DNA of 64,000 nt, from contig NIVC01000432.1 of NCBI GenBank assembly GCA_002269645.1, positions 1 to 64,000 on the forward strand, given 5' to 3'. Below are positions 38,794 to 63,171 of this stretch, one piece after another. How positions within the stretch are numbered: position 1 is the first letter of the stretch; each line of letters starts with the position of its first letter. This stretch comes from Macrostomum lignano. Taxonomy: Eukaryota. A model generated the notes under the pieces. The model was not told where the DNA came from and did not search any database. It saw nothing but the letters and a program-made list of their open reading frames with translations. Position numbers and translations under genes: made by a program.

Positions 38794-39926
38794 ATGGACG
38801 TTGTTGAGGAGCTAAAGCTTCTGCTTAAACTGAAGTCTGATAGTGAGATCGAACAGAGCGATGAGATGTTCCGTAAAGGTGGCTACCTCAGCTTCCGCCG
38901 CGCAGTGACTATCAAGAGGGACCGTGAGCCGCCGATGCACATATTCGTTAAATCTAGCGACGTTACGCGCCCGGAGTTGGATCAGCAGCAGTTTATTAGC
39001 TTCCATGCCTGTCAAAAGGAAGTCATATTCTACGGACTGATGGGTCCCGTGCTCGAGCGGGTCATGGAGCAGTACAACATTAAGCGGGTGTTTCCCAAAA
39101 CGCTTGGACAGAAAATCAAAGACAAGGGCACCATTCTGGTGATGGAGGACATGACGAAGCAGGGGTTCAGTCCTGTAGACAGGATGTCATTTGGTATCGA
39201 GCAGGCCTACTGCGTAGTGAGGTCCCTTGCCCGAATGCAGGCCGCGTTCTGGATCGCTCGGGTGAACTTAACTACTCGCTGGACTCCGTGCTGTTCGGTA
39301 AAGAGTCACCGTTCAGTGACAGTGTACGGAAAAGCGGCATGGATTTCAAGCCAATGATTGAGCGAAATTCTGCGTACTTCTTTGACAATTATGAAAAGCA
39401 TGTAAAATACCCGGAGGACGCACAAGTGATTCGCGAGTACGTGACCAAGTTCATCAAGACACTTTTGGACGATCCAATGAAAGGCATGCCCTGTCTCACT
39501 GACGAGCCACTTGGACTTTCGCACGGCGACCTCTGGTTCTCGAATTTCATGTTCAAGGGCGACGGAGACAACATGATTTGTCGACTGTTTGACTTGCAAT
39601 TTTGGGACATCAGCATCTTCGGCTTCGACCTAGGATTGATGATGGTGACCAGTTTGTCGAATGAGTCAATGCAGGAACACGTGGACAAGATTCCGAAGGA
39701 GTTCTACAGGACATTCAAGGAGATCTACGAGTCGAAGACGGGCAGCCCTGTGCCCTTCTCAGAGGAAGCTGCACTGGGCAACATGGGCCAGTCGATGTTC
39801 TACGCCATGTTCTGGGTGATCGGCACCTGCGACCTGCTGTGGGAGAGCGACAATATTGACGTGACCAACATGCTTTCCAATGTTGCTTTCGCTATTCGCA
39901 CCAATCGCATCAGGTTGCCATTTTAG
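38794..39926 (+). CDS. EcKL / choline-kinase-like paralog C, one -1 frameshift near 39269
   Basis: ORFs 38794-39357 and 39288-39926 join at AACTT[c]AAC (NFN) when compared with the paralogs; HGDLWFSN and LFDLQF motifs. Confidence 0.85.
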
Positions 39927-40930
39927 TTAACGAAGAAACATTTCATTGTGACCACAATCTGATTTAAGAATTTAGTGTACACTAGTTTAAAATAAAACGT
40001 CTCATATATACACTGTAGCTGAAAGTTTACTTGCAGATTTGTGCGTTTGACACCATGTGCTTAGATGAGAATAGTTAACTAATTTCACTCCTATTGACAG
40101 TAGTGTATGAGAAAACATTTTTCTATTTTCCCTTCAATTTCTGGCTGGCTTTTTAATCTCTGTGCCAATTAAAGTACACAAGAGCGATTTTCACCCACTG
40201 AAATACAAAGATCAAAGTACACGAAAGATTATAAGAAAGAAATAATGCTAAACATACAAAACAAAATTAGTTTCCTCAAAGTGTTTGCAAGAAAAAGTAC
40301 ATTGAATTTACAATATTTGCTCCGAAATTACTACTGGGCACATCCTATTCAATTACTGCAATAAGTACAATCGTTCTGTAAGTAACGAAATTTCAATTTG
40401 TCCTAAAGGCCTGGATGGATGCAAGAAAACTGATTAATTGCGCCAGGCAGGAAACTGACTGACGATCTAATTAGGCTAGAACTGACCCCGGTTAGGCACA
40501 ACTAATGCATGCAGAACTCGTGCACCCTGACACTATTGCTACAATAGTCCGAAAGCAATTATCAGCACACAGCCAGTTAGTTAGATATAGGAAGCTACAG
40601 GCACAGCACATGTTCTACATGTAGCTTCCTTCTTGTGGGCCTGGGGCCACGATTCCGCAGTGTCTCTTGCTACTTTTCTACACAAAGCCATGAACATTTC
40701 CGACGCATTGCACAGTTGCTTTTTCATTATCAGCGCTTCCGAGTCAGTAAATCGAACCTCTCTCTGGTAGGTCTTCGCTCTCAGAACTAAAAACTGTATA
40801 TACTGATTGATATTATTTTCTTTGTGAATTCTTGAACTCTATAAGCCGCGAAGAAACTGAATAGTTCTATTTGTTTGAGCTAACATAGATTTTCTGTAAT
40901 AACTTAAGCCATTGACACGAAGCATCAGAT

Positions 40931-42064
40931 ATGGATATAACAAAAGAGCTCATTAGACTTTTCGGCCCAAATTCTGACAAAGACATCACTCTAGAAAAAG
41001 AAATTTTTGGCCAGGGCGGTTACCTTAGTTTTCGCCGGCAAGCCACCGTCAACAAGGAAGAACGAACGCTGCACATATTCGTAAAATCGAGTGATCTAAC
41101 TCGCTCTGAGCTGGATCAGGCAGTGCGGCAGTTATGCAACCACTTTTGCCGAATAGAGTGCATATTTTATGGCCTGGTTGGACCCGTGCTGGAGCGGGTG
41201 ATGGAGCAGTACAACATTGAGCGGGTGTTCCCGAGAGCCTTCGGTCAGAAGATTAGCGACAAGGGCACGATTCTCGTTATGGAGGACATGACGAAGCAAG
41301 GCTTCAGCCTTGTCGATCGGAAATCATTCGGCATCGAGCAGGCTTACTGCGTAGTGAGGACCCTTGCCCGAATGCAGGCCGCGTTCTGGATCGCTCGGGT
41401 GAACTTCAACTACTCGCTGGACTCCGTGCTGTTCGGCCGCGAGTCGCCATTCGCTGATTGCATTAAAAGAAGTGGCGTTGATTTCAGGCCATTTGTCGAG
41501 CAAAGCTCAAAGTACTTTCTTAAACACATAGGAAAGCACGCTTCTCTAGAAGATGCTTCGCTGATTCGAGATACCGTGTTAAAATTCATCGATAATTTGA
41601 TGGAGGATCCGATGAAGGGGATGCCTTGCCTCAATGACGAGCCACTTGGACTTTCGCATGGCGATCTCTGGTTTTCTAACATTCTGTTTAAAGGCGATCA
41701 GAAAGACGGCACAACTTGCTGCTTACTGGACTGGCAGTTCTGGGACCTCAACGTCTTTGGCTTCGACCTTGGCCAGTTGATGTTTACAAGTTTATCCTTC
41801 GAAGCGATGCAGGAACACGCGGACAAGATCCCAAAGGAGTTCTATAGAATGTTCAAGGAGATCTACGAGTCGAAGACGGGCAGCCCTGTGCCGTTTCCAG
41901 AGGAAGCGGCACTTGGTAACATGAGGAAGTCGTTGTTCTACGCTATGTATTGGGTTGTTCGCTCTAGCATCCTGATTTGGGAAAGCGGCAACATTGATGT
42001 GACCAACATGCTGGCTAATATGGCCTTCGCAATTCGTACGGATCGAATCTGGTTTCCATTTTGA
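40931..42064 (+). CDS. EcKL / choline-kinase-like paralog D, intact intronless 377 aa
   Basis: GGYLS N-lobe motif, FVKS, LVMEDM hinge, Brenner-type HGDLWFSN and LLDWQF; APH/choline-kinase fold of the EcKinase/DUF227 type. Confidence 0.9.
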   Translation: MDITKELIRLFGPNSDKDITLEKEIFGQGGYLSFRRQATVNKEERTLHIFVKSSDLTRSELDQAVRQLCNHFCRIECIFYGLVGPVLERVMEQYNIERVFPRAFGQKISDKGTILVMEDMTKQGFSLVDRKSFGIEQAYCVVRTLARMQAAFWIARVNFNYSLDSVLFGRESPFADCIKRSGVDFRPFVEQSSKYFLKHIGKHASLEDASLIRDTVLKFIDNLMEDPMKGMPCLNDEPLGLSHGDLWFSNILFKGDQKDGTTCCLLDWQFWDLNVFGFDLGQLMFTSLSFEAMQEHADKIPKEFYRMFKEIYESKTGSPVPFPEEAALGNMRKSLFYAMYWVVRSSILIWESGNIDVTNMLANMAFAIRTDRIWFPF

Positions 42065-42134
42065 GCAACGCTGTTCACCCAGTCGAGAACAATAACGCTT
42101 AATCCTTTATGCTGACGAATAAATTAGTTCTATT

Positions 42135-42245
42135 TTCCCTTTATACGTCGTAGACTTTCCTGACCCTTTATATGTTCGTAGACTTTCCTGACCCTTTATA
42201 CGTTCGTAGACTTTCCTGACCCTTTATACGTTCGTATACTTTTCC
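42135..42245. repeat. 28-bp tandem repeat x4 (CCCTTTATACGTTCGTAGACTTTCCTGA) between convergent EcKL D and E
   Basis: Directly visible. Confidence 0.9.
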
Positions 42246-42907
42246 GACTGAGGAAATCAAAGACAGCTAGCCTCATATTGATTATAATTTACTTGCTCTG
42301 GGTTTCTATGCAAACTGACTTTAAAAAGTTCGTTGTTTTTTGCTACGAGTACTTCCAATAGGATGACTTGTTCCTGCTGAAGTTCGAATATACCGTTCCA
42401 TTAGCACTACACTTAACCCCCTAGTGAGTCAAATAAAAAGACAAGCTGAAAATAAAAATAAAAAACAAAAAGAAAGGCGCAACGACAGCGCTTATATATA
42501 GTCGAATTATAACTAAAGCGAAGAAAAGCTTCACCGAGTCGAGTTTAGACTACAACTAGCCCACGTTCAGCTCGAATTGGTAAAGTAATATATCGGTACA
42601 CTTACGAATCGTTCACCACGCCGTTTTTGCACTATCGCACTGACAGTAATAAAGCGTGTGCATTTACATAAGGTGTTTAGAGGCTTGTTTACACCGCCAT
42701 CAAATGAAATTACTCGACTAAATAGGAAGTGCTTTGACTTCACGAAAAAACCCTGCACTAATTTCGTTGCCTTGAAAAGGGAAAATTAAGTCAGCTACAA
42801 TACGAATTCTGATAATTTCGCTAGTAAAAAATTCATTTGTTTAAGTACCAGGTGAAAGCCAAAACATAATTGTTAGTAAAAAAATGGTAACACAAGAGAG
42901 GCAAGCC

Positions 42908-44047
42908 TTAGAATTCAAAAGGAAACATAATGCGCTTGGTGCGAATAGCGAACGCAACGTTAGCCAGCATGCTGGACACATCGACGTTGGCACTTTCCCA
43001 CAGCGTGCCGCTTGTGACGATAACCCAGAATAGAGCAGAAAACAGAGAGTGGCCCATGTTGCCCAGTGCGGCCTCCTCCGAGAATGGCACAGGGTTGCCC
43101 GTCTTCGACTCGTAGATCTCCTTGAATGTCCTGTAGAACTCCTTGGGAATCTTGTCCACGTGTTCCTGCATCGCCTCGGTCGACAAGCTAGAAATCATCA
43201 ACAAGCCGAGGTCGAGGCCGAAAACACTGACGTCCCAGAACTGCCAGTCAAATAGTCGACAAATCATACTGCCTCCATCACCCTTGAACATGAAGTTCGA
43301 GAACCAGAGGTCGCCATGCGATATTCCGACGGGCTCATCTGTGAACGCTGGAACCCCTTTCATTGGATCTGCGACTAAAGTTGCGATAAGCTTCTTCACA
43401 AGCTCTTGGATCAGCTCACGATCCGAATGTGACGGTACATGCTTGTGCAAGTTCTCAAAGAAGTACTTCGTGTTTTGTTCCAAAATTTCTTTGAGGTCAA
43501 CGCCACTCTTCCGAATTCCATCACTAAATGGCGACTCGCGGCCGAACAGCACGGAGTCCAGCGAGTAGTTGAAGTTCACCCGAGCGATCCAGAACGCGGC
43601 CTGCAGTCGGGCAAGGGTCCTCACTACGCAGTAAGCCTGCTCGATGCCGAATGACTTCCGATCGACAAGACTGAAGCCTTGCTTCGTCATGTCCTCCATA
43701 ACGAGAATCGTGCCCTTGTCGCTGATCTTCTGACCGAAGGCTCTCGGGAACACCCGCTCAATGTTGTACTGCTCCATGACCCGCTCCAGCACTGGGCCCG
43801 TCAAACCATAGAACACGACCTCGGTACGACAGAAGTGGTTGCTGACCAACTGCAGCGCATTTAGGTCAGACCGAGACACATCGCTAGATTTGATGAAGAT
43901 ATAGATAGGTACTTCGTTGTCTCTTGTAATTTTAACAGGCTTGCGGAAGCTGAGGTAACCACCCTGTCCAAACACCTCTTCTCCCTGAGTGATTTGCTTC
44001 TCAGAGTTCAGATCAAACAAGTGAACAAGTTCTGCTGCTATGTCCAT
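42908..44047 (-). CDS. EcKL / choline-kinase-like paralog E, intact intronless 379 aa
   Basis: Same motifs (GGYLS, FIKS, LVMEDM, HGDLWFSN, LFDWQF); complete ORF. Confidence 0.9.
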   Translation of the reverse strand: MDIAAELVHLFDLNSEKQITQGEEVFGQGGYLSFRKPVKITRDNEVPIYIFIKSSDVSRSDLNALQLVSNHFCRTEVVFYGLTGPVLERVMEQYNIERVFPRAFGQKISDKGTILVMEDMTKQGFSLVDRKSFGIEQAYCVVRTLARLQAAFWIARVNFNYSLDSVLFGRESPFSDGIRKSGVDLKEILEQNTKYFFENLHKHVPSHSDRELIQELVKKLIATLVADPMKGVPAFTDEPVGISHGDLWFSNFMFKGDGGSMICRLFDWQFWDVSVFGLDLGLLMISSLSTEAMQEHVDKIPKEFYRTFKEIYESKTGNPVPFSEEAALGNMGHSLFSALFWVIVTSGTLWESANVDVSSMLANVAFAIRTKRIMFPFEF

Positions 44048-45009: not shown

Positions 45010-45830
45010 CTCCCAGTTGCATCACCGACTTTCCAGGACGTCAGATTGCGCTAACACGAGTAATCTCTCAAATGTGTCACCGGACTCCCAGTACCTCACA
45101 TTGCGCCAATAATCTCCCAAACGTCTCACAGCACTCCCAGAGCCTCACATTGCGCCAATAATCTCCCAAACGTCTCACAGCACTCCCAGAACCTCACATT
45201 GCGCCAATAATCTCCTAAACGTCTCACAGCACTCCCAGAACCTCACATTGCGCCAATAATCTCCCAAACGTCTCACAGCACTCCCAGAACCTCACATTGC
45301 GCGAATAATCTCCCAAGTGTCACCGCACTCCCAGAACCTCAGACTACACTAATAATCCCCCAAGTGTGTGACCGCACTCCCAGAACCTCAGACTACACTA
45401 ATAATCCCCCAAGTGTGTGACCGCACTCCCAGAACCTCAGACTACACTAATAATCCCCCAAGTGTGTGACCGCACTCCCAGAACCTCAGACTACACTAAT
45501 AATCTCCCAAATGTGTCACCGCACTCTCAAAACCTAAGTTACACCAACAATCTCCCAAATGTGTCACCGCACTCCCAGAGCCTCAGACTACACTAATAAT
45601 CTCCTAAGTGTGTCACCGCACTCCCAGAACCCCAGACTACACTAATAATCTCCCAAATGTGTCACCGCACTCCCAGAGCCTCAGACTACACTAATAATCT
45701 CCCAAGTGTGTCACCGCACTCCCAGAACCTCAGACTACACTAATAATCCCCCAAGTGTGTGACCGCACTCCCAGAACCTCAGACTACACTAATAATCTCC
45801 CAAATGTGTCACCGCACTCTTAGAACCTCA
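45010..45830. repeat. 49-bp minisatellite (GCACTCCCAGAACCTCAGACTACACTAATAATCTCCCAAATGTGTCACC) with two unit subtypes
   Basis: 49-bp spacing (45181/45230; 45361/45410); about 16 units; CACATTGCGCC subtype left, CAGACTACACT subtype right. Confidence 0.93.
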
Positions 45831-47246
45831 TAGCCCTAGTCAGCTAACAAAAAATAAACTATTAAACTAAAATACTTGGCTATAAAAATGAATCAGAATT
45901 AAATTCGAGTGATAGAGCGCTTAATTAATTTCTCTCTAGTGAACGAATCAATGTTGTTATATTTTAAGTACAGCAACCATAAATAACTGTATTTAACCCA
46001 TAATCTGCCCACAAACTGCTTTTAATAATTGGAATTCAAGAATTGGACACTTTCTGCAAGAAAAAAACAGATTATACATTTCATAATCAATAATAAAGTC
46101 CAATTTTGCATCAGAGAGAATCTTATTGAAAAGGACATTGTCTACTAGATAGATATCACGCAACAAAACAGACAGTTTATTGTAGAATTCCAAACATTAA
46201 AAATTAATTAATATTTTGGCTTGACAAAACAAGAATGTAGAAAAGCGCCATCCAACCACCTGCACATCCGGAATGAACTGTAGATTTTACTATCATACAA
46301 ACAAAAATCTGAATAAACATTGCATTATTTTCCAAAATCGATCAAGATCACAATTTACACCGTAGTACCGTACAAAGCTGAAATTAATTCCACAAATTAA
46401 GGGAGGGCTAAACTGACACCCAGTTTTTCACCAGCTGAAAAACATTTTCATTTAAAGCATCAAAATTATATAATCATTGGGATTATTGGCATTACAAGAC
46501 TGTCTATCAATCGTCAAATTTGAATAAACTGCAAACATGTAGTCTGCAGACTTGAGCAACTTCTTTGGGTCAGATTGTAAAGGCCTGGGTAGGGATGTTG
46601 CTATGTTATTTGATTTTGAACTCTTTCTTTCACTGAAGAAAGATGCGACGTCAATTCCGGCTTTCAATGTGGCATCCTGAATGCACCCTGGCAACCAGCT
46701 TGTAACATTTCGGGGAGGCTTGATAAATAAAGTTAACTAAATATCATGCATTAATTAGTATTGTCAGTTTGAAGCGATGGTACACACACGGTGAGTGGGC
46801 ACCAACAATTCTTTACAATATTAGAACACATCGCAACCATACTACTAGTCAGTAGGAAACATAGAATATTAATTTCTTAAATGACAAACTGAACTCTGGA
46901 TTCAAGACAACGCTACAAAAAAATACAGCGATATGGAAACTGTGGAGATATAACGAAGGATTATAATTAATAAACACAATAGCCAAGTATAAAAATATTG
47001 TGTACTGCAGTTTTTTGCGCAGAAATTAAAATTAAAAGTGTGACACAATCGCTTATATTTTCTTTTTTTGTTTAAAACAACGAGACAAACGGGAAAAAGA
47101 GCAAAGACTGGAAGCGCATGCAACTGGGACAGATTTCATTTTTCTCGATAACAGAGCTCCTTAATATACAGTGACTGCATAGTCTGCTTATTGTGTAATC
47201 AAAAGCTATAGTAGCCTTGGCGTGAGACAACGGACAGACAGCTAGA

Positions 47247-50200
47247 CTAGCAGCACTTCTTCTTAGACGATTGTCCAGGACTGACTCGGGTGATTCTCAC
47301 GCCTCCGCCTGTGCCGCCACCGTCGGATGCGGCGCTCTGCGCACCCTTGGTCTTCAGAATCTCCGACGTTATTGTGCGAAACATCTGCAAATAACCATAC
47401 GTACGGGGATATATGACTGGCTGGCTGACTGACTGACTGACTGACTGGCTGACTGACTGACTGACTGATTGACTGACTGGCTGACTGACTGACTGACTGA
47501 TTGACTGACTGACTGATTGACTGACTGACTGACTGACTGGCTGGCTGACTGATTGACTGACTGACTGACTGGCTGGCTGACTGATTGACTGACTGACTGA
47601 CTGATTGACTGACTGACTGATTGACTGACTGACTGACTGACTGGCTGGCTGACTGATTGACTGACTGACTGACTGACTGGCTGGCTGACTGATTGACTGA
47701 CTGACTGATTGACTGACTGACTGGCTGACTGACTGATTGACTGACTGACTGATTGACTGACTGACTGACTGACTGACTCACTCACTCACTCACTGACTGA
47801 TTGATTGACTGACTGACTGACTGACTGACTGACTGATTGACTGACTGACTGACTGATTGACTGACTGACTGGCTGACTGATTGACTGACTGACTGACTGA
47901 CTGACTGACTGGCTGGCTGACTGATTGACTGACTGACTGATTGACTGACTGATTGACTGACTGGCTGACTGACTGACTGACTGACTGACTGACTGACTGA
48001 CTGACTGACTGACTGACTGACTCACTCACTCACTCACTCACTGACTGATTGATTGACTGACTGACTGACTCACTGAGTTACTGACTGATTGACTGGCTGG
48101 CTGGCTGGCTGGCTGACTGACTGACTGACTGATTGACTGACTGACTGACTGACTGAATGACTGACTGATCTATTAAGTTGCAATCGACAATGCAGAAGTT
48201 TCGAAGCCTTACCAAGTCAACATTTACATTGTCCTTAGCCGAGGTTTCAATACTCAGCACTCCGTATTCGTTAGCAACTGTTTTCAAATCCGAGGTTGCC
48301 ACCGCTTTAGTCTCGGGACTGTCGTTCTTGTTGCCAACTAATTGGATTTAAAAATAGAGATGCAGTTTTAAGATTTTATTTTAATAATTAGAAAAACATG
48401 ACAAGCTACTTTTAGTAGAATGAATGGCTATCCTTAGGGGGCCATTGCAGCTCATCCACAGCCTAACTGAAATTATTATTGTTATTATTATTATTATTAT
48501 GGTTATTCTTACCTAGCAGCTTAGACACATTTGATGGACAATTATGGTTAATCTCCTCGAACCAGCGTTTAACGTTGGCAAAAGTGGGACCAGAATTGAC
48601 ATCGAAAACCACAATTATACCGTGCGCACCTCGATAATATGTGGCAGTGATTGTGCGAAATCGTTCCTGACCTGCATAGCAGAGAAATTCAAAGTTAGTC
48701 ATGATTAACTAAGAAACTGCAAATTTCACAAATCTCCATCAGAACTAACCAGCCGTGTCCCAAATCTGCAGTTTCACTCTGACTCCATCAATGTCGAGCG
48801 TTTTTATCTTGAAGTCAACACCGATGGTAGTGATGTAGTTGCTTGAAAATGTGTCATCAGTGTAGCGCAGAAGAAGAGCACTCTTGCCCACTCCTACAGA
48901 TGGATAAACAGAGTTGCATTGCCTCAACAGTAGCTGTCACAAACACTACATGGACTGTTGGACTTCTTTGAGTAATTGTCTAGGGTGCTTTAGAGAATTA
49001 AGAAAGCTCAAGATTATAACAGTATAACAATATGAAAGAAAAAAATTTTTGGGTAATTACAATATGTACTTAAAAACTTTGAGATTATTTAGAGCAAAAA
49101 TAGTTTCCTGGAATTATAGGATACTGTTTTAATAGGTGTCTAATTATAATCTAAGAAAAAATTAGATAATTTATTATTGATAATAATTAATAATCGCTTT
49201 TTGAAGTGTCCTAAGGTGAAGTATTCTAAAGTATCCTATTTTGTATAGTTTGTCCAATATATTACTTAGTATCCTTGGCTAAGATCCTTGCTTATAATTA
49301 TGCAAAGATATAATACTATAATACTAGCTTTCAATAATAAAGAACATACTTTCTATATATTCTTTATAATAAAACAACTGACAAAGTGTGGTAGTGCAAA
49401 CTCCCACTGAAGTTTTATTATTTTAAATTTTCTAATAACATATTACAGACTGATGGTGGACTTTCCCATTTTGCTATCAACCCGTTTGTGGCCCTATCTG
49501 CCCACCTTGTGGCGCAGTTCTATGACCTATTTTTGGTCCCCATTCTGGCCTACCCGCCCTTTTTCTGGCCTTGCATGTCCCTTGTTCTGTTTTTATTCTT
49601 TTCCCCTCTGTATTTTCTGCGGACACTTTTGCTCGCCAAGTTCTGGACCCCAGTGTCCATGCCCTGTCCCCATTCTCTGAACCACTTTGCCCACCTTCTG
49701 CTCCCCCTTTTTGTATTTATTTGGCCTCATTTGGCCCAATTCTATAAAGCTCTTCTTCCTCCTCTTCCTGCTCTCCTCTACTATTTTCTCGAATTTTTGC
49801 TTAACTAGTGCTCTGTGGAATAGACCCTAATACATTAATTGCGACTAGCTAATTTCTTTGCTTAGACTCATCCAATCTTTAATTTAGAGCCTAACACTGT
49901 GGCTCCACCGGCATCATTTATTGTCAAGTCAACCTGAACATTAATACTTTGCCAGCCTACTAATAATAATAAAACAAACATCAACCTACTTAATATCTTT
50001 TGCTTAATACTTAATTGAGAGCCATAGCCTATCTTAAGTCATTTGCCTATGGGCGTAAAATAACCAAGTTCTCAACTTAAGGAGAGCCCTGAAACTTCAA
50101 CATTCCATAATACATAAATTATAGTGTTGGCAACACTATTCTACTGATAGTAATAAGTCAAGCATATGAGGTACATTAATTTCGATGTCTAAGGACCCAC

Positions 50201-53200
50201 TCTGAACACTTGCGCCTAACGAAGACCACTCGTCTATAACCAAAACTACCCTCCCCCCTAGGGCCCAGAATTGAAGACCCTGGCAGCCAGAGTATTTAGG
50301 AGAAATTTCATTGAGATTTGTCTGCGCAATTTTCTGGATTTAATTTGTACGAGCTTAACACCAGCAGTAATTCAAAAGACAGAACTGCCCCAATTTGGTG
50401 TCAAACCAGGCAACCACCAACAAATTTTCTTTTCTCTGAATCTCCATCCTTATCTCAAAAGCTTGCTCCATATGTACATAGAGCATGTGTATTTTGAAGA
50501 GTGGAAAGGGTGAAGCATAGAGCAGGGATACAAAGAGCCTTATAGTAGGCCAGAGTGATATGAGTATTTGTCCCCCAGCCTCTAGACACATAGATTCCCT
50601 AGAGGGTGAGCCAGCCAATTGGGGCTAGGCCCACACTGCAAAGAGAGGCAGGTGACACATCCTTGCCAAGACAGTGCATGAGACACTAGGGACAATAGAC
50701 TGCCTAGGGGCAGAGTGCACTCTCTGCTACAATAATATATTTTGACTTAATTTCCTTGTTCTTAAAACTTCTTTTAAATTCAATAAAAATAGGTATCAAT
50801 AAATCAATAACATTCTGGAGCAAAAGAACTAATTCAATATTATAGACAATTTATCTTCAAGCATTTTTGTCCAGGCCTCTTTATCTAATTTTAACAAGGT
50901 AATTTCATTTAAAATACAAGACATAATGTCCAAAAATTAAGATAGTTTTTGAAAATTCTGTTGCTTTTTAGTTGTGTCAGACAAAGTGCTATCATGTCTA
51001 TAAAATTACCACATTCATTATTTAATATTAATATTATGACCTTGTTAATACGCTATGCATTGAAATAATACTTTGTTTATTGATCATGATAATATGGTAG
51101 TAGTATTTATATTTTTAAGAATGCCTATTTCTTAATTTTAAAAAAATAATATTTGTTTTAATAAACAAAATATTCTCAGTTTGTAAAATTTGTTATAAAT
51201 ATACCCAAAACTTGTTATAAATAGGAGTAAAGTTTTAGGAAAAAGACTAACTTGGTTCTTGCCTTGTTGTCAAGCTATAAAGCATAGAAACTTGTTTTCA
51301 GATTCATAAGTGTCAGTCATTTGGTGGTAAGAGATTCTAAGAAGTGTTTAGAAAACTCCCGAAGTGAATCAAGAGTACATGCATTAGAAGTACATGCTAA
51401 GAGCAAGTGCTGTGACCCTCTAATCTTGGTAATGCCTATAGACCAAAGAAGTAGTACATATACTAGTAAGACTACTCAGGCTACAAAGAATGCTACCAGA
51501 ATGCTACTAGAACACTACTTAGACTTATACAAAGAAAAGGTAGACTACAGCAATAGGATTATTAAAAGAGAATTTTAGAACTAGTACAACTTTAAATATG
51601 TATAAAACTGTAGTAAGGTTGTATAATTTTATCACTTATTAATAAAGTTTTTGAAATAAGCTATAAGGACTTAAATTTCTTATCTTACTCCATGAAAAAT
51701 GTAAATAGCATTGGTCATATACTAGTATGCATATTGAAGTTATAGCCATAAGATATGAGATATGAGATTAGCCATAAGAAATTGCTATAGGATGAGATTG
51801 CCTCCTTTTAAAGCCTAGGAGCTACTTGGCTTCTTGAGTTTGATCTTGACATAGCATTATAGATAAGGATATAATTCAAATTAGGAGTCTACAATATTAG
51901 AAATCCTAATTGTCAATGTTGACAATGACATTCATCTTATGTTTATGCAAAATTATATTTTAGTCAAATATCTAAGTGATATAGAGTTAGGCAAAGTGCA
52001 CTAGTATAAGGCTACTAAACTCAATAAACTAGCTTACTGACCCAACAAGGCACATAGCACTAATAAGGCATGAACTAATGAATTGAACAAGGGGTAGTTG
52101 AGGAAGGCAACTTAGAATAGGCTTTTTTATCATCTTAGTAAAAAGTGTTGTGACTGTGAGCAAGCCCTATTGCAGCGCATGGCTTAAGTACGCCAGACGC
52201 CTACACAACCTGCGCCACGCTGTGAAATGACTTACCTGTGAAAGAAACCTAAAGCAAAGTTAACGCAGTTTTGGGTAAACGGCAGGAGTAACTATGACTG
52301 TCTTATCAAGCCTAAATGCCTCGGCATCTAATTAGTACTGCGCCGCGCCGTACTAATCGCCGCGCGCGTATGCGCCGCGCCGCGCCGTATTAGATCCGCG
52401 CCGGACGCCGTCCGCCAAAATGCCCATGCGCTGCAATCAGGCGAGCAAGGGGTAACACATTAGAGCCTGTCTAGGCTTGATACCCTGTCTGTTGCATACC
52501 CAATGCACCCATGCTCCTTTTCCCAAGCACAGACAGCATGACTAAGCTGTCTCATCCCCTGGCCTCCCCACCCTACAGTTTGTATAAGTAATGTCTATGT
52601 GCTGGTATCGCTCTGTCTTACCTAGTCTCTCTTGTGACCCAATCTAAGGCCCTGTGTGGAGGTGGTACAAGAAATAGGTTCTGTTAAATACACAGGCCCT
52701 GCTTGCATGAGGGGCTAAGAAGTTAAGAGTGCCAAATGTGCTGTAACTCTATCAGTCTATAAGACTTGCAATTCTTTGTCAGCCAATAACATTACAGGGC
52801 AGTTAGAACAAAAAGGATAGCTTACAATGCATTTGCATTGATTAGTAATATTAATGAAGTTATAAAACCATGCACTTTTTGCTACTTCTAAAAGAAGAGC
52901 CTTTTACAAGCATATGATTCAAAATGAAACAAAATGATTCTTATTTGGCTATTATCTTTTAGCAATTTGAAAAAGCCAATCTAAAAATCAACATAAATGC
53001 AAGCTTTGAAAAGATCAAGTAAGGGTTTTAACTTTGTCATTGCCTAGGATATAGAAGCAGATATGGCTAAGATTGACACCATTAAAAACTAGTGCAAACT
53101 AACAGATAAGAGCTAGTTGCTAGTTTTCCTTGGATTTGCAAACTACTACAAGAAATTTATATTTATTTTTTTGAAATTGCATTTTTACTATATTTATGGT

Positions 53201-56200
53201 AAAAAAAAGTCCTCAAAATTCTATAATCTTAAATACCACAACAAATTATTTGAAAGTAGCATGCAGTTGCCTCCATAGCTCCCAACTGGCTAGAACTAGC
53301 ATTGAAAGCCCAAATTTGGCTTCATAGGGCAATGTGTAAGTGTCTGAAAGACTTTAACTATGGACTTTTAAATGAACTAAATCATTTAAATAATTATATC
53401 TATACTAATTTATATATTATAGTTCTTATAATTATTATACATGACAGGATCTCTGCTACCTGCTAGAAAAAGCCACCCTACTATAATTTTCTGATCATGA
53501 AAAGCAGCATTATACAACACAGCTACAAGCATAAGTCAAGTGATTGCCATTTTGGCTGCATAGGAGAAAAAACTCCAATTGAAGCTGCTACTACAATTTT
53601 TGAATAGCTACATCTAACAAATGGAAAAAATCAGGCCTTGTTTTTCATACCAACTATAGCATAGTAGCAGCAAAGTAGTTGTAGATGCCAATGTGGACAA
53701 GGCCATGGATTAATAACCAGCAGAGGCCAAAGACCAATGGCTACAAATGAAAGCAGAATAGAGATTGCTGCAATTTAAACACTAGCAAAATGCCCAAAGC
53801 TTATAAATAAATGCATCAAAATAAAGTTACTTTATAGTGATGGCTCTAAATACTGGGACTCTGGCTTTGTTCAACAAAAATTGCCAGCAACTAAAAGTTG
53901 CAAAATTTTATCTAGGATGTTGGAAGTAATATTTGATGATTAACCTGGCAAAAATTATAAATAAAAATTGTACCACAACTATTTCAGTAGAAACCTCAAT
54001 ATCCTTGACTCAGAAGACAGTGACAATGGTATGGATATCAATGATAATTAACTTCAATGATAATTCAGATATATAGTACTTTTCATTGTATAATACATTG
54101 TATACAGACAATAAATCTTCTCTTATATATACAATATATGCATATTAATACTGCTTATGATAATTTGTCTATATATGCACTCATTTAAAAGTGTCATTTT
54201 GCCACTTTTCATTTGTATTCTTCCATTTTATAGTTACTATTAAAACAGCGATATTTTGCATTAAGCTTTTTAGTATTTTGCATATAGCCTTTTTATAAAT
54301 ATTGTACTTTCTCTGCCATTATCTTGTATGTAATGTTTGATATAAAAATGTTTTATTTCTTTACCATTAATCTCCCCTAAAAACACCCATGCCTTATGCT
54401 CATTATATTGCACAAAACGATTATTTGTAAAACTTTATATACTCATATAACTAGCTGTCCTAAATATAATAGTCATTTATTATTCTTTGTTCATAATGGT
54501 TATTTTGATAATAAAGTTGTTTTACTATACATACTATTTTTACTAAACCCACTATAAATGAGTCTAAAGCATGAATTGGGAGGTAAGAGCAACTTGTATT
54601 GCCTTGTCCTAGTGACTAACACTTTGTCCAAAAATTGCTCCTGTCTTTGCTGAACAATTGTTCTAAAAAATAGCTTAGTTGTCACTGTCTATTATTTGAA
54701 GGCATTTAGCCTTCCTTCCCCAAGAGCAATTAGATATTTATAATCTATCCCTACCCCCCCCCCTCTTCTCAGGATATACAGCCCCTTCCCATTCTTCCAA
54801 GATGGTATAACTGCTTCCTTGGCAACCCCACATCATTTTTCTCTCCTATTAGAACAGACATACTGCTTCCCCTACTCTCCTTCTAGACATTCTGCCTAAC
54901 CTAGCATTCTATCAACTCCCCAATTCCAACTCACTGTTTGCTCAGGCCCTTGCTTATCCTTAAACACTCTCCTAATTATTAGGTTTCCTATCCTACCTTT
55001 TCACCCAATTAAACACCCTACCCTCAATGCTAGCATTCTCTATTAGTTATTGGAATTCCCCATTAGTGTCTCCCATTTCCCAGGCAACTATGATCTATGA
55101 CATAGCCCTTCCCTTCTTCCCATTTTCTTCATTAGACTGATTAGACAGTTTTTTGCTACTTGGACACTTAGGCTGTTAAGGGAATCTCTAATGCATACTC
55201 CCTAAAGTAGTATTATTTGAATATTTCTCCCAATTCCAAGAAATTCCCAAGTAAACCTTATCTTTGAGACCCAATTATTGCATAATAGAACTAGAAGCAT
55301 TAAGCCCAACAAATTCCTAAACCCAGAACCTCTACAACACTATTTGCCTATCACATTATTTTACTTGGGTATATGTGCAACATATGTTAAAACATTCTTT
55401 TTTGATAATTGGTATTGCCTAAAGGTTTGTAATTATATAATTAACAAGAAAAATATGTATATAATCTATTTATATATATAGAATTAAGAAAATTAAGAGT
55501 AAGAATTATATTAAGTATATAAAATGTACTAAAATTGTATTTAATATCATGATTTTGCATTAAAATGTTTCTTAGAAAAATTCAAAATATGGAACAATAG
55601 TTTTTACAACAGTCACAGCTAAGAAATTTCTTGCAAAAATAGTGTAACTTGTTTTCAATTTAACTTTTGTAAAATTGTCCAATTGGTCTATGTTTTATCT
55701 CATTTTAAAACTTTTGTATTGCACTTTAAATAAATTGACTCATTATTTGTATTTTATATTATATAACTTTTTTGTTTATAAGTAGCACTATTTCGGTCAT
55801 ATTTGCATTTTTTTAATTTGTGCTAAAAAATTTAAATCTCACTATCTAAAGTCTTTATAAAAGTAATATTAAAATATTTAAAGTATATATGCCATTCAAA
55901 AATAGAACTTTTAGTAAAATTTTAATAAAACAACTTTATTAAATTTAGTCATTAACATGTATTCTTCTATTTATTAAAAATTATATAAAATATCATATAG
56001 AATCAATATCCTATAGCCCTTAGGCAAAGGCCTGAAAAAAACCAAGCCAAAGGAGACTAAGCAAATTTTTGCCAGCCCATCTATCTAAGATAAAGCCAGC
56101 CCATCTATCTAACCCCCCTTTCCGATAGTCTGGATCATACTAGGTGAATGCCCAAACAAAAATTGAATAGCTCTTTATGTTTTATTAGAATGTAAGGTTT

Positions 56201-59200
56201 TAAGTTACTCCCAAAATTGTAAGAGAATTATAAATGCATGCCAAATATTTTAAGTACATGCCCACTTTCAAATCTCTGCTGGTGTTGCAACAATAAATGC
56301 CCTTTTTACATTGCAACAATAAATGACCTTTTTGAATTGGTAAGAAACCTATTTTGGCTAATTGTTTGATTTTTTGCAAGTACTATTTGTGTAGAAAATT
56401 GTACTTGTACTGGCTTTTTCTATTTAAATGCCTTGTTAAGAGTTTTAAAAACCTGGAAAGCTTAAAATTTATGCTTAAAAATTAACTTAATCTTTTATCT
56501 TTTTTTATCATTCATCTTTTTTACTTAACACTAAATTTTCTCTGCATGATTCCATAAAGTGCATGCCGGGTTTGCACACACTATTTTCTAAGGAGTGATG
56601 CATTCATGCAAACTGTGCACACCTAGCTTTTGATATGCAAAGCCAATGCATACCCAAATTTTTAGGCAGGTATATAGACTATATGATCTAGAGTGTAGTA
56701 CTCATAATAGTTATAATAAGCTATACGCAGTGTTGGGCATGATACTCAAAAAAGTATCAATGAAAACCAATACTCTAATACCCTTTCTGAAAAAAAGTAT
56801 CGCTGATACCTGAAAGTTCAATACCTAAATTTGAGTTTTGGCAATATCCTCATACATGCGCAACCTCCAAAATTCAGTCGGCTGTGCGACTTAGTTTTAA
56901 CAAAAATGCGACATAGTTTTTGGCCAAAAATGTGACTTACATGTAAAAAACCCAAAAGCAAAATTAACGCAGCTTTGGGTAAATGGCAGGAGTAACCTTG
57001 ACCGTCTTATAAAGCCAAAATGCCTCATCAGCTACTTAGTACTACTTGGGTTTTTTTGGGGTGGGCATTTTTGCGACTTCCTTGGTTGGCCGCCAAATCG
57101 GTAGGCTGGATTGGCTGACTCGGCCGACTGTTGCGCATGTATGGATATCCTAATTTCAATACTCTATTGCAATACCCAGTTTTTGCAAAAAGAATGCTTA
57201 ACAAATATAGATGCATATGATTTAAGTCTCTCAGACCTTTTCCTAGATTTTTAAGGCAAATAAAGCAAGCTTAGCATTGTTTTAAATCTCAAAGCCTTCA
57301 ATGAAACAAATAAAATAAAAGTAACAAATGAAAACCAATAGTTGCCACTATAGTCAATCATTAACTATTTACTAGCCTCCGTAGTCATTATTCTTTATAC
57401 CTATTAGCACTGTACAATTGTTTTAATATAGTGTGGTGGCCTGTCAGTCTACGATTGGTGTCTGCATGCTTAACAGCTCAGCCTTGTTTTTGGGTTGAGT
57501 GCACTTACATATGCATATGTACTCAGCTAGCCAGACCAAATGCTTTAAGCCAAGGTAGAGACTTTAAGGCTTTACCTCTGATTGGGCAACACCTTGCCCC
57601 TCCACTCTTTATACATGTAAACCTAATTGCCTCATTTCTCTTCCTTAGACTCAACTTGGCCTAATATATGCTTCCAAAATAGTGGATTTATTTATTTATT
57701 GCTGTATGCATGTACATGTTTGTATATGTAAGCATTGTTCACTAAATTGCTTGTCTTACTAATGTAGCACTAGTGTATTTGCTAATTGTAGAAATTATGG
57801 AATTGATTAGCAATCAATGACTAACAGTGCTGTAGAACTTGCAGCATGATAATTGACTAAATAATATCATTTTAATGATAATTACTAATTATCATTAAGC
57901 TAATTAATAAAGTATATATGGGCATAAGCTATTTTAAATTTTTTTAAAAACTTGATTTAAGATCAAAAGTATTAATTATTTCAGCTTTATTGACCTAAAA
58001 GTGAAGTATTTATCATTACTATGCTAGCCTGTATTCCTATAAGCTTTGCGTGCCTAATAAATATCTATAATAGTAGTGAAGTTATTATTGCAATTTATAC
58101 AAGTAAAATAGTTGGTTATTATCCATGTTGAATCCATGAAAATAATTTAGCCTTTTGTTTTACTACACGAAATATTGACAATAAAAATACTTTGTTATAA
58201 ATGTAGCCTCCTAGACCCTATATATACAAGCCAATTTGCCCCCAAATAAACCAACTTGCTTGCTGGCTACGCACTTCTAGCTTGTTCATTCGCTAAATCC
58301 ACAGACTTATTCTTATCAAGTTGGTTATTTGCAAAACTAAAGAGTTGAAGTGCCCAAAAACTTATTAAGAGAAGGGATTGGAGAAATATACAAAGGAAAT
58401 TCAGAGAGTGATTGCTGAGACCCTCTAGTCAAGGTAACACCCTAGAGACTAGTAATGGATTGAAATTCAATATTGATTTTGATATTCCGAACTTCGAAAC
58501 TAATTTTGCATTGAAATAATTTCGATTTTGAATTTCGACACCATTAATCAAAAATCATTTCGAAATTTTGGTTATATTTTAACAATTTAAACATTGATGA
58601 TCATGCTACACAAGTAAGAAAATCTATAGGAAGTGAAAGGAAGTGCAGTTCAAAGACTCAGTGGGGAGGTGAGAATCGTCTTTTCTATAAGAAAAGATTG
58701 TGCAAGACACACACTGTTCCAGGCCTTGTGCTGCACCCACCTCAATCTCTACAAGCCCACTGGCTGAACTCATTGACGTGGATTTTAATTGGCTAAAGAC
58801 TTAAAGCCTTAATGAAATAGATATAGGCTACTCGTATCTAGATCTTCAGTTTAAACAGTGGTGAAGTATAATACAACTTTTACTATATTTCTATGTACAA
58901 GTGTATAATACATAATACACCAGCATTTTCTATTTCGTATTTTTAAAGTAAGTTAAATCTTAAGTATTCTGGTGGTTTAAACATATCAAAGATACTTTTT
59001 ATAAAACATGTAAGCTCATACATGTAGAGGCAAGGTGTTAACCTTTTTGCATGATTAGCAAAAAAGTAAAAATTTGTTAAGCTCAAAAATTTTGATTTTG
59101 ATTTTGTTACAATTTCAATTTTGATTCTAAGGAACCAAAAATTTCAATTTTGATTTCAATTTGAAAAATAATTTTAATCCATCACTACTAAAGACTGAAG

Positions 59201-59209
59201 AGATACTAA

Positions 59210-59244
<35 letters not shown>

Positions 59245-60005
59245 AAATATAGCCATACCAGTACTAGACCACTCAGGCCAAATTATACATTAGACGCTAC
59301 AGAATTATACATTAAATGCTACCAGACTTATACATTAGACGCTACCCTGAAAAATATGAAATTCTAAGAAACAAGTAGAAATTTAAAAGAGAGAAATTAA
59401 ACCCCTGTTACAACTTTGGTGGTTTAGCTATTGAAATATAGAGTAAGAAGAAATAGCCCTGTTACAACTTGGTGGCAATTAGTAGGATAGTTGGAGGACA
59501 GAAGTAACCCCTGCGACAACTTTGCTAGCTTAACAGTGGGATTTTGTATTGATTAGGAACAACCCTATGACATTACTTTCTGTAAAATTATGCAACTATT
59601 TTATTCATTTTAACAAAATTTTGATTGTTTGCATGCTCAAAATTTTAAAAGTATTTGACTATATATTAGGAAAATTTGAAATTTGTATCAGAAGTTAGGC
59701 TTACTGAAGTGACGAAGTCTGATATGATAAAAAAGTATCAAATTCCAATACTCCAATACCCAAAAAGTATTGCCGATAGTATTGGAGTATTGGAATTGTG
59801 CCCAACAGTGGCTATATGGCTAGATAACAATATAAAATATTTTTTTATAGAACTTCCTAGTTAAATTATACAAAAAATTAACAGACAACATTATATAGAG
59901 AATAAATACCAATGAGAAGCAAAAAGCCAGAGCCCAGAGGGCAGACTTACCACTATCACCAATAATCAACAATTTAAAAAGAAAGTGGTAGTCTGGTGAG
60001 CTCAT
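47247..60005 (-). CDS. RAB35: Rab35-like small GTPase; exons 60005-59951, 48893-48750, 48671-48513, 48337-48213, 47384-47247 (206 aa)
   Basis: [19 protein letters not shown]...[13 protein letters not shown]...[26 protein letters not shown]...[12 protein letters not shown]...VGNKNDSP...[10 protein letters not shown]...KKKCC*. All four introns are GT-AG with matching phases (55+144+159+125+138 = 621 nt). [20 protein letters not shown] and GNKND.P fit Rab35 better than Rab1. Confidence 0.9.
47416..48168. repeat. (GACT)n = (CAGT)n microsatellite with GATT/GGCT variants in Rab35 intron 4
   Basis: Directly visible, about 750 bp. Confidence 0.97.
52225..52340. repeat. Dispersed ~115-bp repeat, second copy at about 56930-57045 (probable non-autonomous element)
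   Basis: TGACTTAC.TGT.AAA.AA.CC.AAAGCAAA.TTAACGCAG.TTTGGGTAAA.GGCAGGAGTAAC..TGAC.GTCTTAT.AAGCC.AAATGCCTC...TAGTACT present in both copies. Confidence 0.8.
59741..59797. repeat. Perfect 19-bp inverted repeat with a 19-bp spacer (MITE-like relic)
   Basis: AATTCCAATACTCCAATAC (59741-59759) is the exact reverse complement of GTATTGGAGTATTGGAATT (59779-59797); related AAAAAGTATC/CCAATAC words at 56735-56850. Confidence 0.85.
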
Positions 60006-60949
60006 CACTGAGATACGATACAATAGCAATTTTTTATTCTGTGTATGAAATAGCTAAACTATACAAGTTGCAGAATACTGAATACTGTGAATAATAGACT
60101 TTATAATTTATAGTGCCTAGCCTTGAGCTAAACTTAATTTAACACATTAGACTCAAAACGTTTTATAGTAAATATACTATTATACAGAAGTCTGAATGGA
60201 TTATGTAATGTTAATGTAAACCTTTTGCTGACAGGTGCGTCACAGCTAAAGCAATCAGAAACAAAAATGTATGTAAGCTATAATAAGTAGATAGATGAGG
60301 CTATGTTTATCGGTGGTGAATGTTAGCTAAGTTGCGTTACGTTGCCCTGCACATTAAACGGTATTAAACCGATCAGGGGGGGCCGTACATTGAGTCCGTC
60401 GTGTTATACGATGGCAAATTTAAATTTTTACAGATAGATCATGATTATAACATTACAGGTGAGCTAAATACTGAAGTTTTTATGCACCTAATGCTGTTTA
60501 TAGATAAAAAATCGAAACTTTCGCAAAATTCGAAGCGAATATATTTTATCGGAGCTTACAGCACAGTCCCTGATCATTACTCCTTTGTTTGTTGCAAGGT
60601 ACATACATGTTTTCATGTACATGCAAGGTTTAGCGACAAAAACGAAAGATTTTTTGGGTTATATTCATCATTTTCATTCTTAAATAAAGAATTGCGGCAG
60701 TGTATTCCCGTTTCTTACGACTTATTTTCTGCTGTCTTTAACAGTTTCGATTTGCAAGCATTTGTGATCAGATGTTTATCATTTCCCTGATATCTGTATG
60801 CACAGTGTACGAGCTAAATATATATATTTATAGCTTCCATAGTTCTTTATTCCTCCAAATTGGTAAAAATTGCGTAGCTTATTTATATTTGCATGTGTTA
60901 TGCACAGTAATTTGCATGTACGCGAGAACGATTCCATCCGGTCAATTTG

Positions 60950-61900
60950 TCAGACAAGCCTGAGTATGTCTATACTCAGATCTAGAGGAAAAGCTCAATA
61001 CAACAAAGGTACACCTCACGTGACAGAAGGGAGGGTGGCAGAACGTACGCCTTTGGCCGCGCTCCTCAAAAAGTCAGCCCCCCGTTGCAGGTCAGAAAAA
61101 CGGGGCTCGCGCATTGCACAGAAGCAGCTCGGGGCCGGTAGCGCTTTGGGGTAATCATGCTAAAACAGCTCTCCGCGATTAAACAGCTTCGCGGAACATG
61201 AGGGACATGAGGGAGATCCCCCGACGCTCTTCTTTCCGTGTAGTGCCTGGGCTTCGTCGGGATTGCGACAATGTGCGTTGTCATCCACTCAAAGGGAACA
61301 GCCCCTTCCAGCATTAAGGACGTCGTTTATACCACTCAATCCCCCTCAGTGGCGACTCTCTGTATTCACACAGCGCTTCGACGGGTACCTCGTCCGGGCC
61401 GGTGGCGCAGCCAGCACAATGCGAGCAAACCGTACTACGTTGGTGCTGCCACTACGTTTTGGTTTTGGTGGCCAAAATACATTGGCCAAAATCGTCTTGC
61501 GACGGAAGTACCGTCTCCCGGTCTCCAGTGGCCGTGGCAGATTTTATGGCAGTGTCGATACCGGCGAAGAAGTCACGCAGCTAATTTCTGGTGGGTTTTG
61601 CCGACCAGATTCAGCGCCGTCTTCTTTATTTTTCGTCCAGTGCGAGCATTAATAGCGGGTCGGACAAGCTAATTCCTGTGGTCCATTCCTGCGAAGTTGA
61701 CGCACCTGATATCATTGACGGCAACCTAGCTATTGGCGCTTCGTGTAGGTCTCTGCCAGGGATTTCTCGGCCTTGGAAGTCGGCTGTCTGATCCGTTGCA
61801 GCCAATGTCCGCCTCGCCTCCTTCCCTTCCTTAGCCCAGACTGGGAGATTGTGCGCTGCCGGCTGCATTAAAGGCAACGTCTTGCATTGGCAGCGGCTAT
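60950..61900 (-). mobile_element. Decayed non-LTR retrotransposon (LINE, RTE-like) ORF2 / reverse-transcriptase fragment
   Basis: Minus-strand peptides in order across frameshifts: ATGPDEVPVEAL, VPFEWMTTHIVAIP, RGISLMS, AKLFNR, matching the pre-RT GPDGIPAE / P.EW...I..IPK / YRGISL..KLFNR signature of LINE ORF2. Clade assignment tentative. Confidence 0.7.
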
Positions 61901-63171
61901 CGATCGGGTGGGTACGGGTGGGTCGCAGAGCTACATGTATACACGGCATACTACTCCTGAGGTGAAAGTGACTTGCGAGTAGTGTTCAGAGTACATGTAC
62001 ATAGCTTGTGTTTCCATGGACGCGCATCAATAAAGACGCGTGTCCTTTGGTGACCATAAAGGATTTAAGTTTAAAACCAAGAGTGTTTTCTGCACGGTTT
62101 ATACTCTCAATTTTCTACACTTGCATGTACACCATACCATCATCGGCTGCTATCGGGTTAGTTATACCTCAAATGCTTGATTGTCATGCCAGCAGTCAGC
62201 ATCGTATGTTGGATGCAAATCATTTTGTGCGAACAGCAAAGCTATAAGACTAAACGTGTTGATATAAGGTTTGTTGCGAGCAAAAACAACCAACTTTGGT
62301 TGGCAATTGCTTCATGGTTGACAGAACAAGGTTGCAAGGGTATGAGAGTGAAACATGAAACATCAGTGTAACTTGATGCAACGCTGGTGCCGTGAATTTT
62401 GATAGTTATAATTTTCTGCTAGCTTAGCCTGGCCTGACAGTCGTCAACGAACAGTGCAATTGCTTGCCTACGTTTCTGTATACTGAAGCAACTTTTTTGC
62501 TTCTGGGGCTAACCACCCGAAAATACATGACCCCCATGTAGAAGGGAATGTTGTCAGTGCACATGTTACTCTTGTCCGAAGCGAATTAAGATTTCAAAGA
62601 GGATTCCGAAGAGTCTCAAGTAAGCCTGGACAAAATGTATGAGATTTCAAGCACTTCACAGCTACATCGATGACTTTGGTAGCTCTTATACCTATTTGAA
62701 GTCAACGACCGAACTGGAAGTGTCTCGCTTCCTTATTTGACTAAGAAAAGAGCTGTGAGTGTTTAAAAAAACCAAAATCTATTGAACCCGAAATAGCTCG
62801 AGTGTCCTTGTAACACCTTTCTTAGTTGGTTCCTATAGCTACCTATTGAAGCTTTGCTATGCCACTTTGGTTTGATGAAATACAGAGAAATCGACGAGGG
62901 CTCTTCTGTGTTGGAATTTTTCAGCCCAGTCAAATTGCTTCGCGGGGATTTTCTCTCAAAATTTCACTTCCTCGTTGCTTCGAGTTGCTGACGTCAAAAA
63001 TTTCTTAAATCATTTTTTTCTCACAAATGAAGCTCAAACTCTATTTTAGGAAAATGAAAATGAAATCGTACTTTTGGATGCACAATAATGTTAAAATATG
63101 CACTCAGGACACCAAGGAGAGACTGACAGACAATCGGTTCCCAGAAAATGAGTATGTATGAATACGTGATT

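Follow-up and report, generated by a model that had tools for sequence, protein, structure and literature searches.

Local CpG decay over the first intron of Rab35 in Macrostomum lignano: a candidate footprint of germline methylation

Reduction or loss of DNA methylation is a textbook trait of flatworms. A CpG desert of about 10 kb in a flatworm gene raises the question of what removes CpG there and whether it still does so. The desert lies in the first intron of Rab35 of Macrostomum lignano, within a stretch of 64,000 nucleotides (contig NIVC01000432.1 of assembly GCA_002269645.1, positions 1 to 64,000) that was analysed whole and is called the window below. An earlier reading of the bare sequence, here the original prediction, had proposed long-standing germline methylation targeted to this long intron. 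By comparing the locus with a second copy and with a paralogous gene, we find that the CpG loss is local, CpG-specific, of deamination type and continuing, and that active methylation of a transposon-filled intron is its probable cause. According to reviews that cite Wasik et al. 2015, DNMT1 and DNMT3 (with ALKB2) persist in M. lignano and 5-methylcytosine (5mC) is present at a low level; the same reviews state that planarians and parasitic flatworms lost the DNMT enzymes, and treat the genomic pattern of 5mC in free-living flatworms as undescribed (PMC11292947, PMC9246332, PMC10658182). In the light of those reviews, the paradox that the original prediction implied for a weakly methylated lineage is smaller.

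CpG depletion and turnover over exon 1 and intron 1

The protein spliced from minus-strand exons of the window is 100% identical to M. lignano BOX15_Mlig009737g2, annotated as Rab-35, and Pfam assigns it to the Ras family. Its coding sequence (CDS) has five exons on the minus strand and a 206-aa product, and every intron is GT-AG. The gene and the depleted DNA are laid out as follows (window coordinates; o/e, observed/expected ratio; L003, the second copy of the locus).

59951-60005, minus strand: Rab35 exon 1 (CDS), ATG at 60005-60003
48894-59950, minus strand: Rab35 intron 1, 11,057 bp, GT donor and AG acceptor checked
48750-48893, 48513-48671, 48213-48337 and 47247-47384, minus strand: Rab35 exons 2-5, three short introns between them, CpG-normal
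49900-60020, unstranded: CpG-hypermutable, CpG-depleted block, comprising exon 1 and intron 1 except its last ~1 kb
52610-54248, unstranded: longest CpG-free run, 1,639 bp, inside a copy-specific segment (51104-54237)
54419-55793, unstranded: second CpG-free run, 1,375 bp, in sequence common to L003 at 85-91% identity
60021-61000, unstranded: promoter-proximal upstream DNA, CpG o/e 1.01 at a GC content of 0.34, stable CpG

In 1-kb bins over 49-60 kb the CpG o/e is 0.00-0.32, with one bin at 0.49 and a single exception, the bin that holds a CpG-rich islet at 52164-52442; over 28-45 kb and 60-62 kb it is 0.9-1.3. The longest run contains no CG against 42 expected from base composition, and 79 GpC (Poisson P = 4e-17, computed like the following values at a local background CpG o/e of 0.9). 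The second has none against 31 expected, and 37 GpC (P = 6e-13), and 50351-52175 has two against 48.5 (P = 1e-16). The original prediction had listed these two runs and the two-CG stretch, and its counts all hold. It had also described AT-rich DNA at 33-34 kb as rich in CG and placed the return of CG at about 60310; the stretch 33001-34000 (GC 0.33) indeed carries 33 CpG (o/e 1.20), and upstream of the gene CpG sets in again at 60311.

Base composition does not account for these values. For the calculation of strand-symmetric dinucleotide odds, two young miniature inverted-repeat transposable elements (MITEs) were removed from the block, and pooled AT-rich intergenic DNA of the same window served as control. 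The CpG odds ratio is 0.15 in the block (GC 0.32) versus 0.96 in the control (GC 0.35), so that the equality with composition-matched intergenic DNA which would have spoken against the original prediction is absent. For GpC the odds are 1.50 and 1.37 and for TA 0.96 and 0.86, leaving CpG as the sole dinucleotide strongly shifted. The remaining long CpG-free runs of the window are satellites from which GpC is likewise missing, and satellites were rejected as a source of the intronic runs.

The second copy of the Rab35 locus (L003, contig NIVC01001481.1, record positions 128,216-165,165) is collinear with the one studied here (L001; record 37,247-70,005 of its contig, reversed, so that L001 x = 70,006 minus window coordinate): a RhoGEF gene lies upstream of Rab35 and EcKL genes downstream. 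We aligned L001 to L003 and counted conserved sites in 1-kb bins; the flank comparison takes in ~10 kb on the upstream side and ~15 kb on the downstream side, and the left half of the window lies outside it. Between 50,006 and 60,005 of the window, 0/23 CpG sites are identical in L003 versus 147/195 GpC sites (75%; Fisher p = 4e-13). The flanks keep 881/958 CpG (92%) and 1207/1276 GpC (95%), that is, they show little excess of CpG change. Because collinear segments share no CpG site but three-quarters of their GpC sites, and the flanks nearly all of both, the loss must be local and have occurred in place.

The kind of change is equally specific. A count in intron 1 covered 20 CpG sites, and at 80% of them one copy has CG and the other TG or CA. 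A TG-versus-CA double difference is the mark of one ancestral CpG lost on opposite strands in two copies, and 14 such doubles fall within the block and one outside it. The original prediction had read the depletion as CpG loss rather than composition, and both the depletion of CpG alone and the CG-to-TG/CA differences between locus copies bear this out; the swaps that it had noted between copies of an intronic repeat (AAACGG/AAATGG and GACTGT/GACCGT) are present as well.

Both edges of the block can be placed from the same alignment. At the 5' edge, CpGs at or above 60160 are conserved in L003 and those at or below 60017 all differ, and 17/22 CpG sites of 60160-60811 are identical. The 3' edge falls ~1 kb short of exon 2, with CpGs at or below 49842 conserved and those at or above 49909 not. 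Over the ~1 kb of intron 1 that adjoins exon 2, CpG sites are as stable between copies as GpC, and in two 1-kb bins of 47006-49005, covering exons 2-5 and the short introns, 23/25 and 22/24 CpGs are conserved. The confinement to the first intron that the original prediction had claimed therefore becomes confinement to exon 1 and intron 1. CpG is stable in the promoter, in the end of the intron (~1 kb), in exons 2-5 and in ~25 kb of flanks, all of which act as unmethylated DNA would.

The intron-1 pattern of Rab35 is repeated in Rab35b, a paralogue with 69% identity, the same exon layout and three copies (L002, L004 on contig NIVC01000045.1, and L005). In L002 the CpG o/e is 0.8-1.7 upstream (0.9-1.5 in most 500-bp bins), is 0.2-0.4 from the gene start exactly, and recovers where the 5-kb intron 1 ends; exons 3-5 of Rab35b are CpG-normal. 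Between intron 1 of L002 and of L005, 7/23 CpG sites are conserved versus 40/53 GpC sites (p = 3e-4), and the comparison of L002 with L004 is nearly the same. Seven TG-versus-CA doubles separate L002 from L005 in intron 1, and none is found in the upstream flank. Intron 1 of L004 and L005 appears less depleted owing to young CpG-rich inserts; these two copies have three intron-1 CpG differences, all in the CpG-poor part. Over the loci, block length tracks the intron, at about 5 kb (L002), 10 kb (L001) and 15 kb (L003).

Transposons in the introns and features of the surrounding DNA

Intron 1 of Rab35 is a patchwork: L001 has several segments of its own, 0.3-3.1 kb long, and L003 has others of up to 6.4 kb. 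Its mobile or copy-specific parts, and a further transposon at L004, are these (TIR, terminal inverted repeat).

51104-54237, unstranded: copy-specific 3.1-kb segment, missing from L003, holding the 1,639-bp CpG-free run and the islet
52164-52442, unstranded: CpG-rich islet, a MITE-like insert of 279 bp with 19-nt TIRs and 31 CpG
56852-57143, unstranded: 292-bp MITE, TIR CATACATGCGCAAC / GTTGCGCATGTATG
56728-59810, unstranded: candidate 3.1-kb TIR transposon in the 5' part of the intron, ends CAGTGTTGGGCA ... TGCCCAACAGTG
L004 1812-4788, unstranded: TIR DNA transposon of 2,977 bp outside called genes, with CCCGATCAAAAA... terminal repeats and ends CCCGATCAAAAAAAG...

The MITE at 56852-57143 is a young insert. 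Its orthologous site is empty in L003 (307 bp versus 6 bp), and the element therefore inserted after the copies split; since then 9/21 of its inferred ancestral CpGs have been lost, compared with changes at 6/248 other positions (Fisher p = 6e-8), from which it follows that the decay is continuing. The islet shows partial homology to this MITE family. In the three MITE copies available, CpG loss amounts to 9/21 (in the intron), 4/21 (nested in the L004 transposon) and 3/21 (in another intron), against non-CpG changes at 4-6 of 248 positions, and exceeds these in each. The original prediction had suggested comparing intragenic with intergenic copies of one transposable element (TE) family; the comparison was possible for this one family, with three copies, and CpG-biased loss occurs in all three places rather than in the intragenic ones alone.

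The candidate element at 56728-59810 was read by eye: its two ends are complementary at 11/12 terminal bases and have similar subterminal motifs. An additional insert of 6.4 kb in intron 1 of L003 contains an open reading frame (ORF) with an RNase H domain, a piece of a retroelement. This ORF (L003 13841-14794) is intact, with 317 aa, and CpG o/e there is 0.34-0.67 at a GC content of 0.43-0.55, which suggests partial CpG decay around it; a protein search with it returned 9 matches, 8 from the ENA collection and 1 from Logan assemblies. Intron 1 of the window contains no tRNA, no Rfam family and no ORF of more than 87 aa. A BLAST search of the intron and the copy-specific segments against the window and the five loci recovered the MITE family only, and in the CpG-free segments common to both copies no transposon protein or repeat was recognised within that same set.

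The transposon at L004 is polymorphic: it lies at a site that is empty in L002 and L005, and its flanks are 97.6% (upstream) and 99.8% (downstream) identical to L005. Repeats of the GTCTTAAGA type occupy its subterminal parts, and a CpG-rich MITE is nested in it beside an AGGCCT-rich core; its terminal repeat has no match in the 64-kb window. At L002 20332-20733, in an intron of a ULK4-like kinase gene, lies a tandem repeat with 21-bp units (GATCAGAGACCAGCTATTAGG); most differences between the units are of CG against CA or TG. This repeat may be a second CpG-hypermutable spot, with an out-of-register alignment that prevents a clean count; the patch in the ULK4-like gene that had looked CpG-hypermutable in the alignment was rejected, being this repeat out of register.

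Elsewhere the window holds tandem repeats and a gene array. The tandem-repeat load is exceptional (many sites in 2645-30263, and 45054-45830 and 47414-48168): one array, (TCTA)n at 18871-21066, is 2.2 kb long, others consist of (TGTC)n, (TATC)n or (AGAT)n, satellites with units of 11 to 49 bp extend over 0.3-1.5 kb, a (TGAC)n array of 755 bp lies within Rab35 intron 4, and an interstitial telomere-like array, (TAGGGTT)x36, sits mid-contig at 21776-22027. Ecdysteroid-kinase-like (EcKL/DUF1679) genes without introns, along with gene fragments, form an array at 34293-44047; they lie on either strand, with ~75% DNA identity to each other, and the array encloses a Tctex-1 family gene at 35712-36281; the array is CpG-normal and stable between locus copies. 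A protein search with the EcKL kinase for further M. lignano loci had the window's own gene as its sole match, and an exact look-up of three window ORFs (EcKL 40931-42064, Tctex 35712-36281 and 22063-22635) matched no recorded gene. Upstream of Rab35, the GC-rich DNA at 60900-62100 has a CpG o/e of 0.98 and is conserved at 98% in L003. The original prediction had seen a long interspersed nuclear element (LINE) relic with its CGs intact at 61-62 kb; the CGs are there, and the identity as a LINE found no support from Pfam, which gave no match in four of the six frames.

Explanations for the depleted block

Taken together, the block is probably the footprint of dense, long-standing and still active germline CpG methylation over the transposon-filled intron 1. 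We infer both 5mC as the cause and what recruits it, and the germline methylation of a long intron in the original prediction thus stands in part: the CpG-specific decay in place and its repetition in the paralogue are observed, and 5mC itself is read from sequence. The DNMT3/DNMT1 system reported as retained in M. lignano would keep CpGs of the block methylated, and deamination of 5mC to thymine would turn CG into TG or CA at roughly 10-20 times background (an estimate from the 0/23 versus 75% conservation and the MITE counts), running on until nearly no CpG remains. Guided by small RNAs or heterochromatin, methylation would target the transposon nest and spread over the block, to be stopped by the active promoter; the block would be bordered by this unmethylated promoter on one side and by the 3' exon cluster on the other. 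New transposon insertions would enter either CpG-rich, and then decay, or already CpG-free.

Such targeting with spreading is favoured over transcription-coupled gene-body methylation, and a transposon nest is indicated by copy-specific indels, two TIR MITEs, the candidate TIR element and the RNase H ORF in L003. If methylation were instead of the canonical gene-body kind, with H3K36me3 recruiting DNMT3 over the whole Rab35 unit, the intron would stand out only as the bulk of the gene. In every copy the depletion does set in where the transcription unit begins, and the promoter is spared; as a conserved GTPase of membrane trafficking, Rab35 belongs to a type of gene usually methylated in mosaic genomes, and exon 2 is slightly CpG-poor (5 versus 7.9 expected, and 3 versus 8.2 in Rab35b). 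The canonical form is strongest on exons, however, and exons 2-5 pooled, including the poorly conserved and unconstrained C-terminal tail, have 34 CpG versus 33.2 expected. CpGs in these exons, in the short introns and in the final ~1 kb of intron 1 are conserved like GpC, and the length of the block follows that of the intron, not that of the gene or a set distance from its start. Because exons 2-5 are CpG-normal with conserved CpGs, whole-gene-body methylation in its canonical form does not describe this locus, and we consider it unlikely. A quite unlikely sole cause is imported composition, that is, transposons already CpG-free on arrival filling the intron without any local process. Import has some support: the L004 transposon is recent, lies outside called genes and has a CpG-free core of 1,411 bp (33 CpG expected, 69 GpC present), so CpG-free DNA can arrive ready-made, and the 1.64-kb run lies within a 3.1-kb segment missing from the other copy. 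It does not explain why collinear segments present in both copies share no CpG, or how a MITE that inserted only once the copies had split could lose 43% of its CpGs where it sits; turnover in shared segments and decay of that MITE point to a local process acting now, with import as a contributor only.

The block could also be DNA that is merely older or faster-mutating, for example beside converted flanks or under transcription-associated mutagenesis, and that lost CpG through AT-biased mutation with no methylation. Between L001 and L003 the block is 8.3% diverged overall (5-11% in 1-kb bins) versus 1.6-2.5% in the flanks (bins 0.4-3%), in transitions and transversions alike, and its GC content is 0.32 against 0.45. 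Two further comparisons agree: for Rab35b, L002 10001-13000 versus L004/L005 differs by 6.3% in the CpG-poor block and 1.4-1.9% in flanks, and L004 10058-13818 versus L005 by 0.47% in the block and 0.15% in flanks (p = 0.013). Misalignment was rejected as the source, the ratio of transitions to transversions being 2.4 inside and 1.4 outside. The block thus has either a longer coalescence or a higher general mutation rate, which is confounded in time with the CpG effect; faster mutation in methylated chromatin may be responsible, or else gene conversion that homogenises the flanks and is blocked by the transposon indels. The contrast between CpG and GpC survives the raised divergence, with CpG at 0% conservation and odds of 0.15 where GpC is at 75% and 1.5. 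Similarly AT-rich intergenic DNA of the window has nearly full CpG odds, and the differences are of the CG-to-TG/CA and TG-versus-CA types, all of which makes an origin without methylation very unlikely. An artefact of assembly or annotation (a mis-join, contaminant DNA or a wrong gene model) is hardly credible: we found nothing in its support, the structure is alike on two independent contigs with collinear flanks, the GT-AG gene model equals the deposited protein exactly, and the loci contain no Ns.

Several observations weigh against methylation as the full account of the block. The raised divergence just described, 3-5 times that of the flanks at all sites, transitions and transversions included, in three independent comparisons of copies, is one. 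Another is that the excess of TpG/CpA is close to nil, with CA/TG odds of 1.12 in the block versus 1.09 in the control; at the GC content of the block the expected gain is only ~0.2 and could have eroded. (Mutation resembling repeat-induced point mutation was rejected, there being no loss of CpA/TpG with gain of TpA.) The 1.64-kb run may have arrived depleted with its copy-specific segment, or predate the split, and the CpG-free core at L004 means that part of the Rab35 desert may have been imported in that state; the suggestion in the original prediction that TEs are methylated only when intragenic is weakened by this element outside called genes. Dense CpG also persists where decay would be expected. 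The islet at 52164-52442 is undecayed inside the desert, and a 1.1-kb CpG-dense insert (L004 10992-12082 / L005 10408-11510) has no CpG difference between copies (of an intron-1 total of 72 CpG, an estimated ~45 lie in the insert and 27 elsewhere). Such inserts may have arrived too recently for decay, or may escape methylation as CpG islands do; for the islet, which lies in a segment missing from L003, survival may only mean youth. Finally, the sample comprises only two paralogous genes, at five loci (L001-L005).

A wider proposal is doubtful, though worth stating: the low 5mC of M. lignano might be concentrated in sharply bounded, transposon-filled first-intron islands of expressed genes, sparing exons and intergenic DNA, and such islands might mutate 3-5 times faster at all sites. 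They would be the animal equivalent of the heterochromatic introns known from plants. A possible cause is that a nuclear small-RNA pathway detects only transposons within host pre-mRNA; the faster mutation could possibly reflect, for example, DNMT by-product damage or exclusion from gene conversion.

Relation to known methylation systems

The locus amounts to a prediction, made from sequence alone, of a site of germline 5mC in M. lignano with its promoter, downstream exons and neighbouring genes free. If this is general, M. lignano would methylate mainly intragenic transposon nests rather than exons, which would bear on the split of gene-body from transposon methylation in animal evolution and would make this transgenic, RNA interference-tractable animal a model for that split. 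Comparing CpG with GpC conservation between duplicated loci needs no methylome and is applicable genome-wide in the duplicated M. lignano genome. The exon-sparing layout departs from classical invertebrate gene-body methylation, in a species whose methylome pattern is essentially undescribed.

In the mosaic methylation of invertebrates such as Ciona and many others, CpG-depleted methylated domains lie beside CpG-normal unmethylated ones (see also PMC11292947). The Rab35 block resembles this in sharply abutting CpG-normal DNA, in its deamination-type depletion, in the spared promoter and in the reported presence of DNMT1 and DNMT3. It differs in its target: mosaic methylation covers transcribed gene bodies, with exons as the prime target, whereas the Rab35 block coincides with the transposon-filled first intron and leaves exons 2-5 and the 3' end unaffected. 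Vertebrates, the sponge Amphimedon and some arthropods methylate TEs (see also PMC9246332). With these the locus shares a putative transposon nest as target, a depletion (CpG o/e 0.15) that equals that of bulk DNA in vertebrates, and the decay of young inserts; unlike in them, the rest of the 64-kb window is undepleted, including satellite-rich and repeat-bearing intergenic DNA. On intergenic transposons of M. lignano the data comprise one element with a CpG-free core and one MITE family with CpG-biased loss. The islet of 279 bp and 31 CpG in a CpG-free block, and the CpG-rich 1.1-kb insert without turnover in the paralogue intron, recall vertebrate CpG islands, but the islet is a MITE-like TIR insert in a copy-specific segment and may just be young. 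In Arabidopsis, genes of the IBM1 and RPP7 type are expressed across introns that hold heterochromatic, methylated transposons, which are handled by IBM2/ASI1/EDM2. Rab35 would be similar in having a putative methylated transposon island within an intron, unmethylated exons and transcription through the whole gene; kingdom and methylation contexts differ, and the likeness is one of analogy only.

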